A stretch of DNA of 63,552 nt, the filler included, from Choristocarpus tenellus KU-1152 (lineage: Eukaryota; Protista; Phaeophyceae): assembly GCA_964200185.2 (NCBI GenBank). It is 11 parts of 11 records of this genome, joined end to end, with 100 filler letters (N's around TTAATTAATTAA, not from the genome) between each part and the next. Parts side by side here need not be neighbours in the genome. Positions count along the whole stretch, not along the records: positions 1 to 3,529 come from CAXNAD020019439.1; 10 more parts are not named here. One strand, written 5' to 3'. A program made the translations under genes and the position numbers. Positions 1 through 3,529 of the stretch are shown piece after piece. The notes under the pieces were generated by a model. It was not told the origin of the DNA. It was given only the letters and a program-made list of their open reading frames with translations, and ran no database searches. Position 1 is the stretch's first letter. Each line of letters opens with the position of its first letter.

Positions 1-2
1 TC

Positions 3-606
3 AATATCATGGACCTGTGCTTCTTCAGGTCTTTGAAATGCCGGGTTATGGGGGAGCGGTTTGTGTGCAATTTACCTTGGAAGGTATTGCTATTTATCAG
101 TAGTGAAGACACAAGCCCCTTTTTTGAATGTGAAAAGAATGGATGGATGAAAATAGAAGAGTGACCTTGTGGGGTGCCTCCTATTGCTTGTTTCTTTATT
201 ATTGTTTGTGTCAGAACAGTTTATCTGCAATACCGAACTCTATAGATAATTTAGATGAACTATCTCATTAGTGACACCACTTGGACTCAATTCAATGCAA
301 TAATCTCGCATGCACAAAATAAGGTACACCTAACTATTGTCCTGTTTTGCACAGTTTGGGTCTGTTGAGGATATGGTGAAGGTCATTGAGAAACAGTATG
401 AGTATGATGAAACTACACTTGAGAGGGCTTGGCAGCTCCTTTTTGTGGTGTACAATCAAGTACTTAGATACAAAGGGGGGAGTGACTTCAGTGTGGAACA
501 CACAGGAGTAAGGAAGAGGCAGTTGTGTGGTGAGCTTAAAAACACGCCGAAGGTAGACATGGAGGCTTTTTCTGTGGCTGATAAAATTGAGATGGATGGG
601 GAGTAA
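3..606 (+). pseudogene. C-terminal part of a Tc1/mariner DD39D-type transposase, interrupted by a solo LTR at 64-353
   Basis: 3-62 reads NIMDLCFFRSLKCRVMGERF (resembles the SPDLNVLDLGFF motif); 355-606 reads FGSVEDMVKVIEKQYEYDETTLERAWQLLFVVYNQVLRYKGGSDFSVEH...stop (resembles the GGNxYxxPH tail). A degenerate right TIR follows at ~704-725. Confidence 0.75.
64..353. mobile_element. Solo LTR (290 bp) with 5-bp TSD GTTTG
   Basis: Begins TGTGCAA and ends TTGCACA (7-bp inverted termini, TG...CA). GTTTG is at 59-63 and 354-358. Removing the element plus one TSD restores the transposase frame. A related copy is at 15751-16067. Confidence 0.85.
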
Positions 607-1099
607 TGATAATAATAAGAGATGAACATAAATTTGTCAAGGATTCCAAATCTTCTTTCAGAAATGAATTTCATCATCTTCAAAACTTATGGACAACACG
701 GCACAGACTTACGGAACATAGGTAGTTAGTACGTGGACATACACAAGACTTCAGGGTCACAGACTCATGCAGTACCTCTACTCTTGAAATATAATTTGGT
801 TCGAGGGAGGAAAAGATAAATTTCGATTAGAGGAATGGAAGAGGGCAATGAAGAGCTATGCTTCGGCTGCTTCATAGAAGTTAATCATGGTGGACACCTA
901 CAGTACGTTGTGGGCTAGTTTGTATGATAGGTTGTATCTTTCCAACCTGCACTACTTATTTCAAAGCTATTTCAAACGCCTGGTGAGCCAGCCACTTCAG
1001 GATGGAAAATGAAATGGACACAAAAACAGGTCGATGAAATATTAGAGCAAACATTTGTGGGTGGATGGAGGGAAAAGAAAATAAACGAAGCTGGAAATG

Positions 1100-2600
1100 A
1101 TTGAAATTCAAACTCTGGAACACTGACAGTGATAAACTTGGTGAGAGTGATAGAAAACACTACGACTCAACTCTACTGCAATTATTATGATACTCCCCGC
1201 GACTATAAATATTTGTTATTAAATCTACGCAACTTTCATGTCCACTATGGAATACAGCGAGGTTGGGACAAGGCTCAGGGTATCTGCGACACAAGAACCC
1301 ACCACATCGGGATGGACATCCTGAGTTCAATGCAGAACAATCTTGTAATTTTTCCTGCATTGGAAACTGTCGAACTGACCAATGTTCCATATTCATGAGC
1401 TTGGGATGGTATACACTTTTGCTCAACGACGTAAAGTTGAGCGAGGCAAGAGTTTCTAGGTTTCTAGTGTTGGGATCAGGCGTACCCAATCTGTGACAGG
1501 CTTGTCGAACAAAGAACAAAGTCGTGTCAAAAAGGCGATTGATCTACCAGTCTACCCACCTCCCTCCCTGTCAAGAATTGGGTCCGCTGCTCAATCTCAG
1601 AGACATGGGATTTGATATCCACACAGGAGCCAACAGAATCCGTCAACGTCTCGATTTGTCCTTGGGCAGGCAGGGCCTGGAATTTTTATCATGAAACAAG
1701 GGATGAAAAAAGAAACAGCATTTTCTTGTTCTTTTCCACCGTGAGAGACTTTTTGGAGACAGAGGGTTAGGGCTGTATGAGGTGGGTGGGATTTACATCA
1801 AAAACGAACAGGGTCGCCCTCCTCTGGTGACAGACGTACTGCAGGTGTCCTCTTTCCCCGTAGTTTATGCACCATCCTTTGAATGTACACAGACCGGCAT
1901 GTTTTATCAGACCGCATTTATCACATTTCTCAATAATTCCAGTGGTGTTGACACGAGACCTTGCTGTGTACGGGATCATGTCATACCAGGTTTTGCATGA
2001 TAACCAGTCATGCTGTGGCCACTACCCTGATTGGCCTTTAATTTTCTCACAATAAGAGCGCTCCCTGTCTCTCTACAGTTCTCTGCTTCCCTCTGCAAGG
2101 AAAAATATCATGAACAAAGAGCATGTTGGATCATGACTCTTGTCCTCTCCCTGTTCTCATGGGGTTGTAGGTAATGCTTGGTGATTTGGTAGTCATTGTA
2201 CTAACAGATCAGCATGGCAATTTGTAGGACTTGCTCTGGCATCTCATCCTCCATCATAACCATCTAACCCCACCCAGTCCCTCATAGTGGGAAGGTAATC
2301 TTGGGGTCTGACCCAACAGTATCTTGACATTCATCACCCAATTTCTGAAACCTAGAAAATTTTCTCATCTAAATGGATGAGAAATTCTTTCCTTAGCTGC
2401 TTCCACACCTCAAAAGGTGAAGCTGCATTGCAGACAATACACCTGTAGAAACTACTGGTGGTAATCCTCAACACAATGTCGTAAGCCTTCTTGGTCTGGA
2501 TGACTTTTTCTTCATTCACTCCTTCTCCCTTGATGAAGTCAATGTCTCCCACCTGAAGAGGGTCCTACCTTTCCTCCAGAGCTTGGTTGATACTGCCTTT
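1100..2600 (-). mobile_element. Degenerate Ty1/copia gag-pol remnant
   Basis: Gag-like ...CNAASPFEVWKQLRKEF (2352-2552); zinc-knuckle-like KCDKCGLIKH and CINYGERGHLQYVC (1767-1979); weak protease and integrase traces downstream; many stops and frameshifts. Boundaries are approximate. Confidence 0.6.
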
Positions 2601-2809
2601 CGTGCCTAAGAAGGCACATTTTTTGGTGAGCCACTCAGGATAATTGCCATCTGACCATTGGAGGAGCTTAGTTTGGAAGCCTTCAGAGGCCATGAGTGCA
2701 GTTTACCTACCCAGGTCACTTTAGTCCTAGCTGCGCCTCCTCTAGTTAGAGTATATTTGTTGACGGTTAAGCGTCTTGAAAAGCTTTGAGTATAAAAGGC
2801 TCGACGCCA

Positions 2810-2990
2810 AGGCACAGGAGGGTAGTGATGTAGCATAGCTGGTAGCAATATAGTAAATAGGAGTAAATAGATGATAGAAAAATGTCTTTCACATTTACGA
2901 CACCTGTTACTTTTTTAGGGGTTGTTCTGACATTTTAATGGTTTTTCATTGGTTTCTCCCCAGACACATCTGGAAAATGTCAGAGGGCAT
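2810..2990 (-). repeat. Dispersed repeat shared with 21490-21650 (probably LTR or leader of the copia family)
   Basis: The reverse complement matches 21490-21650 in colinear blocks: CCCTCTGACATTTTCCAGATGTGTC, AAACCAATGAAAA, TGTCGTAAATGTG, TATGCTACA. Confidence 0.75.
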
Positions 2991-3529
2991 AAAAATAAAT
3001 TGAGGTTTCCTATCAGGAATCCCAGACTCCAGTGGAGGATCTTTCGCGAGGTTGGGGCGTGGAATCTTCTCAATCCCACAAGTAGTGGATAGCTGTTCGA
3101 TCAGAGATGTCAAACACCAAATATTCTCTTTCTTGTCACACCTTGACATTCTGATGGTCATTTTCTGATGAGATACCTTATATTGCACACCTCCACACTC
3201 TGCAGTCCTCTGCGATACTCTGGAATTCTCTGCAGTTCTCTACAGTTTTTGCACTTGTCCAACCCCTAGCATTGCTCTCTTGGTTACGGTTCGTCTTGGT
3301 CCATGTTGGTTCATGTTGGTCCATATTGGTTCTTGTTGGTCCTTCTGGTTCGTCTTGCCCACTGATTCTCTTCACCACCCTTACCTGAGCGAACCACGTC
3401 GGCACAGATTGATGCATAGTACTATTATAATATAATAGTGTAATGTAAATGTATATAATATGTGAAAGTGTCAAAGGTGCCAAGTTCTTTTTTGCTCAAG
3501 GGGGCAATCACAATCACCGGACTGAACTC

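Follow-up and report, generated by a model that had tools for sequence, protein, structure and literature searches.

Introduction

Among classified introners, LTR elements have been reported to account for about 12%, and Copia solo LTRs to form functional introns in Panicum virgatum (Gozashti et al. 2025, PNAS; PMC12130899). For introners derived from DNA transposons, the co-option of the target-site duplication for a splice site is an established model (reviewed in PMC11282704). In Micromonas and Aureococcus, the introners of this second type carry splice signals throughout the family and occupy thousands of genes. Brown algae are not mentioned in the main text of PMC12130899, and their introns have been reported to be more than 90% ancient and stable, with almost no recent intron gain.

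Here, we describe a locus of the brown alga Choristocarpus tenellus in which a solo LTR of the Ty1/copia type, together with its target-site duplication, has the outward form of a spliceosomal intron inside a transposase reading frame. The concept is the same as that of the published LTR and solo-LTR introners, in which a Copia LTR or solo LTR lies in an exon and is removed as an intron. Those introners, however, are annotated and RNA-seq-checked introns of expressed genes (PMC12130899), whereas the present case lies in a transposon remnant that no gene model matches and belongs to a family without splice-related bias. With the DNA-transposon introners of Micromonas and Aureococcus (PMC11282704) the locus shares the use of duplicated target bases to complete one or both splice dinucleotides; unlike them, it needs a chance GNNNG target for both dinucleotides, a condition that holds for about 9% of insertions per strand. 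As a repeat, the element resembles other Ty1/copia solo LTRs that are nested in foreign elements, with TG...CA inverted-repeat ends, a 5-bp duplication and many solo copies.

A first-pass annotation of this locus had proposed that the LTR family could be an intron generator, distinct from the DNA-transposon introners. The category of an LTR-based intron generator is already in the literature, since LTR and solo-LTR introners have been published (PMC12130899), and so has the co-option of target duplications (PMC11282704). We did not find spelled out in these two papers the simple rule that TG/CA termini combined with a GNNNG target produce a GT...AG unit with a net gain of 3 nt.

Results

The window, that is, the whole stretch of DNA, comprises 63,552 nucleotides with its filler, and all coordinates given below count along it. 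The element occupies positions 64-353 (minus strand), is 290 bp long and has the termini TGTGCAA...TTGCACA, so that on direct reading its TG...CA ends form a 7-nt terminal inverted repeat. Two copies of GTTTG flank it directly, one at 59-63 and one at 354-358. In order to examine the empty site, we joined both flanks and compared the resulting query by blastn with the paralogues in the same genome. The sequence ...GAGCGGTTTGGGTC... was uninterrupted and contained one GTTTG in 28 of the 29 paralogous host copies that were fetched. Comparison of the unjoined flanks gave the same result, with two abutting blastn matches at each host locus (window 1-66 and 354-726), and a protein alignment shows no interruption at the insertion point in the transposase homologues from other brown algae. 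The insertion at 64-353 is therefore real, far beyond chance, because 28 paralogous copies of the host hold the uninterrupted site. The first-pass annotation had described a TG...CA element that splits a transposase frame between two GTTTG duplications, and had called for alignment with uninterrupted transposase copies. Each of its coordinates and sequence details proved correct on direct reading, the single GTTTG of the 28 paralogues supplied the empty site, and the interrupted frame can be specified as Tc1/mariner-like.

The host of the insertion enters the window at the contig edge, which cuts it at base 1. Positions 1-58 (plus strand) hold the C-terminal catalytic region of a Tc1/mariner-like transposase pseudogene (...NIMDLCFFRSLKCRVMGE...), which is 85-97% identical to paralogous copies and aligns with the "...SPDLNINDLGFFASLK..." block of brown-algal transposase homologues. 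The rest of the frame, 83 codons reading FGSVEDMVKV...MDGE, follows at 355-606 (plus strand) and ends in a stop codon at 604-606. Beyond it lies the 3' non-coding end of the transposon at 607-727 (plus strand), in which similarity to the other copies breaks off at about 725-726. In 20 of 21 other copies the conserved 3' end ...GGAGGTAG has TA, the target site of the host element, immediately behind it; the window copy has TT there. The host segment 354-606 has at least 495 candidate places in the genome, and the 39 other places that were scored are 90-92% identical to it at the DNA level.

The contig edge lies 62 nt before the formal splice donor. The two exons of the host were searched separately in the protein and Pfam comparisons, and the identity of the host was taken from a longer paralogue and its homologues. 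Pfam searches with each of the two exons gave no match for such short pieces. All 29 host copies examined are broken; the longest open frame among them spans 260 codons and shows a weak match to DDE_3 (E=0.003, 17.9 bits, below the 28.6-bit cut-off). Protein searches returned entries named "unnamed protein product [Choristocarpus tenellus]" at 52-85% identity and homologues from Laminaria digitata and Sphacelaria rigidula at 52-57% identity. Tc3-type HTH domains (PF01498, PF13565) are present in two of the close homologues, of which one is unnamed and the other comes from Laminaria digitata, and the protein alignment contains QQDGA.PH and SPDLN..DL.FF blocks, which are typical of Tc1/mariner-type DDE transposases. 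The sequence thus points to a dead, decayed Tc1/mariner-like transposon, one of several hundred copies. It is like the Tc1/mariner-like transposons of brown algae in its putative DDE_3-type block, its TA target and the Tc3-type HTH of its homologues, but differs from them in that every host copy examined is decayed and that only some 100 C-terminal codons and the 3' end are present here.

The 3.5-kb contig that carries the locus (window 1-3,529) consists of repeats throughout. Directly after the end of the host transposon, positions 727-1766 hold an unclassified repeat without a long ORF, of which about 10 other genomic copies exist at 78-85% identity. This repeat is followed at 1767-2693 (minus strand) by a decayed copia-like gag with a weak Retrotran_gag_2 match (E=0.09), in which the ORF at 1767-1979 (minus strand) contains two degenerate CCHC-type zinc knuckles; the gag has many genomic copies at 67-74% identity and belongs to a family different from that of the LTR at 64-353. 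The next repeat, at 2810-2999, is about 190 bp long and high-copy, with 81-86% identity among at least 15 copies; some contigs (for example C13636 and C17260) have it several times and in both orientations, as a MITE or a small LTR might be. Degenerate 10-bp tandem units, in CTCTGCAGTY-like and GGTYCATGTT-like arrays, lie at 3198-3347. Pieces of 3234-3430 recur at other loci (L014, L030, L034 and L046) and therefore belong to a further repeat family. An Rfam scan of the window gave no match.

The element at 64-353 belongs to a family with at least 915 candidate places in the 164-Mb genome; the 40 of these that were scored showed 71-85% identity over full-length matches, with fragments reaching 96%. 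We examined 68 copies of the LTR with their flanks, keeping the orientation of the first-pass annotation. In 28 of the 68 the right flank is a shared sequence, CTCCCCCATGAGAG..., whose reverse complement ends in ...ATGGGGGAG (...GGGGGAG) directly before the LTR. This GGGGGAG is a predicted polypurine tract (PPT) before a 3' LTR. Another 21 copies have a conserved left flank, ...AAGGCTCATAACC, which would represent the PBS side and ends in ...GGCTCATAACC in these 21 of 68. The remaining 19 have unrelated flanks on both sides, with perfect 5-bp duplications in 12 and duplications with one mismatch in 5. Across the family, the exact terminal 7-mers are retained in 59 and 60 of the 68 copies. The sense strand of the LTR is the minus strand of the window, and the LTR is thus antisense to the host reading frame.

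The internal parts of the family described here come from different decayed copies, and the order of domains is to be read in that way. On the strand that shows the polypurine tract, the PBS-side flank follows the LTR and continues into a gag-like ORF; about 0.6-1.3 kb past the 5' LTR lies a Pol_BBD domain (E=1e-10), and about 2.2-2.6 kb past it an integrase SH3-like domain (SH3_retrovirus, E=1.3e-13). At locus L013, ORFs with YVDD and a copia-type RNase H/C-terminal motif stand just before the PPT on the same strand. The RT/RNase H-like and gag-like fragments of the decayed copies had no Pfam match at E<0.01, and the classification as copia is based on Pol_BBD, the integrase SH3-like domain and the visible motifs. 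A search for complete elements, in which two LTRs share a single duplication, yielded none, as contigs were short or copies rearranged. Together, the 5-bp duplication, the side-specific internal flanks of sister copies and the internal copia-like ORFs bear out the original proposal of a solo LTR: the element at 64-353 is a solo LTR of a high-copy Ty1/copia-type family, which appears not to have been described by name.

Several other loci of the family show further arrangements. Same-orientation LTR pairs only about 0.9 kb and about 2.2 kb apart were found at L073 (G000:C11892:905-2443) and L068 (G000:C4155), respectively, and suggest short, internally deleted, non-autonomous derivatives. At L024 (G000:C5451), one LTR copy has PBS-side internal sequence on one side and PPT-side sequence on the other, which implies two tandem elements with a common LTR.

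With its PBS- and PPT-side sister copies and its gag-like, Pol_BBD, integrase SH3-like and RT-RNase H-like ORFs, the family is like other Ty1/copia LTR elements. It differs from the known ones in its putative primer-binding sequence, which lacks a TGG start (L005, L006, L010 and others) and shares 11 nt with a tRNA-Met anticodon arm: the opposite strand of the PBS-side flank contains GGCTCATAACC, 11 nt identical to the anticodon arm of tRNA-Met (CAT). This likeness recalls Drosophila copia, which is primed by a half-tRNA. The priming tRNA was sought by three pattern searches and with ARAGORN, which returned as their sole match a bacterial/organellar-type tRNA-Met on contig C1, with 11 nt in common, and no nuclear candidate. 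This contig, the largest one, bears a tight cluster of tRNA-Ser, tRNA-Met and tRNA-Pro genes (L125, G000:C1:62112-65141). The tRNA-Met of the cluster belongs to the bacterial/organellar initiator type, so that C1 may derive from an organelle or a bacterium and not from the nucleus.

At the locus itself, the last G of the left duplication and the LTR start TGTGC make up a formal 5' splice site, GTGTGC, at 63-68 (plus strand), and the LTR end CA together with the first G of the right duplication makes up a formal 3' splice site, CAG, at 352-354 (plus strand). A branch-point-like CTAAC motif is present at 330-334 (plus strand), 20 nt upstream of the formal acceptor, and 11 of the 15 positions from 335 to 349 are pyrimidines. 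The insertion amounts to 295 nt, and removal of 63-354 (292 nt) leaves a net 3 nt, so that the formally spliced frame reads ...GERF followed by FGSVED and stays in frame with one extra Phe. In these respects the first-pass annotation was accurate: the GT at 63-64, the CAG at 352-354, the CTAAC at 330-334 and the in-frame arithmetic were all confirmed by reading.

We compared these signals with four native introns in actin-family genes of the same genome, which have GTGAGG, GTGTGT, GTGACA and GTATGT as donors, CAG acceptors and lengths of about 90-550 nt. The formal unit is not implausible, because its length falls within this range and one native intron uses GTGTGT; were the locus transcribed, splicing of the 292-nt GTGTGC...CAG unit with its CTAAC would be plausible. 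A protein search with the downstream exon returned ten Choristocarpus gene models, the best at 90% identity, all from other copies and none from this contig. We infer that the formal splice sites are without any function.

The features that make this copy intron-like are not shared by its family. CTAAC occurs in one of the 68 copies, namely the window copy, and the family sequence at that place is CTCAC in 41 of 55 assessable copies. CTAAC is therefore a private substitution of this copy and is not supplied by the LTR family; in principle, the single C-to-A change that created it could be adaptive. The target preference of the family was determined from 66 duplications (loci L001-L030 and L074-L112). 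Position 1 is G in 42% and T in only 8% of them; at position 5, C accounts for 36% and T for 32% (together 68%), against 18% for G, and A or T prevails at positions 2 and 4. The resulting pattern, G-W-N-W-C, is weakly palindromic, as is typical of integrases.

The intron-generator proposal had called for a test for enrichment of GNNNG targets, and we found none. Such targets make up 6 of the 66 (about 9%), where base composition predicts 4.9% (p=0.11) and the position-wise frequencies of the family predict 7.7%, or about 5 cases. CNNNC targets, which give the same arrangement on the other strand, account for 7 of 66 (about 11%). The two classes combined (13 of 66) exceed the plain base-composition expectation (p=0.011), but this excess is gone once we allow for the integrase itself, which favours G as the first and C as the fifth target base. 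By arithmetic alone, about 20% of insertions give a formal GT...AG unit with a net 3 nt on one strand or the other. With one in five insertions qualifying and hundreds of copies in the genome, a case such as that in the window is expected. Splice signals are hence not supplied consistently across the family, since GT and AG arise only with GNNNG or CNNNC targets.

In a small sample, the 16 further solo copies that have matching duplications, none lies in recognisable coding sequence, a result that goes against the intron-generator claim. After in-silico removal of the LTR, 5 of the 16 have open frames of 150-191 codons; nine flank pieces were scanned without any Pfam match, and the three that were translated look low-complexity. 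One solo LTR, at L022 (G000:C26233:128-420), has a GTAAG duplication, and its uninterrupted target, ...ATGGG followed by GTAAGTTTTTG, looks like a native 5' splice site. The proposal had also called for a test of sense orientation among copies in coding sequence, which is inapplicable here, the LTR being antisense to the host frame.

Discussion

Very probably, one transposon here inserted into another in the ordinary way, and its two LTRs later recombined, in a region made up of repeats only. A copy of a Tc1/mariner-like DNA transposon would already have been resident when a Ty1/copia LTR retrotransposon integrated into its 3' coding part, antisense to the host frame, and this integration would have duplicated the 5-bp target GTTTG. 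Later recombination between the two LTRs would have removed the internal part of the retrotransposon and left the 290-bp solo LTR; this order of events is the one that we infer. The GT...AG boundaries and the net 3 nt would then be automatic, given TG...CA termini and a target with G as its first and last base. The splice-like arrangement would thus be an expected by-product of integration, neither selected nor a family-level intron device, because about 9% of the insertions of the family have a GNNNG and about 11% a CNNNC target.

Two other accounts of the structure can be set against this nested insertion. The LTR could have been wrongly joined into a transposon copy during assembly of a repeat-rich draft, as might be suspected for a contig that is short (3.5 kb) and all repeats in an assembly fragmented into 27,310 contigs. 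The bases that are single in 28 paralogues are nevertheless perfectly duplicated here, over 5 bp and around exact TG/CA ends, which is the footprint of integration; the probability of a chimera is next to nil, and we rejected misassembly on the strength of this perfect duplication at the precise ends of the element. The small size of the 290-bp element, its high copy number and its TGTGCAA/TTGCACA inverted repeat would also suit a MITE with 7-bp terminal inverted repeats and a 5-bp duplication, rather than an LTR. Against this, two conserved internal sequences, each of which keeps to its own side of the element, adjoin 49 of the 68 copies, and one of these recurrent flanks ends in a polypurine tract while the other leads into gag-like ORFs and Pol_BBD. 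A MITE is extremely improbable on these grounds, and we excluded it, as such side-specific internal flanks are the signature of 5' and 3' LTRs.

A further account is that the solo LTR and its duplication are a working spliceosomal intron that rescues the transposase frame, in a family that acts as an LTR-type introner for GNNNG targets. The exactness of the GT...AG and 3-nt arithmetic speaks for it, as do the GTGTGT donor of a native intron in the same genome and the suitable distance of CTAAC and a pyrimidine tract from the acceptor. Because the LTR is antisense, it also brings no sense-strand LTR polyadenylation signal into a host transcript, and LTR and solo-LTR introners exist elsewhere (PMC12130899). 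We nonetheless consider a working intron very unlikely. The CTAAC motif is private to one of 68 copies, GNNNG targets do not rise above the preference of the integrase, no gene model matches this copy, the 16 other solo copies compared lie outside recognisable coding sequence, and brown-algal introns have been described as ancient and stable. Moreover, the host is a dead, multi-copy transposon, so that there is nothing for selection to preserve. The intron-generator claim falls on the same observations of the private CTAAC, the unenriched GNNNG, the dead host and the missing gene model. A broader version, in which copia solo LTRs such as those of this family would supply brown algae, at a low level that has escaped notice, with spliceable insertions and now and then with new introns, with the change from CTCAC to CTAAC as a post-insertion improvement of the branch site, is highly improbable on the sequences compared here.

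As found, the nested insertion is routine repeat biology, a retrotransposon remnant within a dead DNA transposon. The arithmetic of TG...CA termini and a 5-bp target of the form G...G nevertheless provides a simple and checkable rule for LTR insertions that an exon could tolerate, and screens of LTR-type introners can usefully take the frequency measured here, about 9-11% for each strand, as their null expectation. The case would matter only if such copies proved to be spliced in real brown-algal genes; the lineage has been reported to show almost no recent gain of introns.
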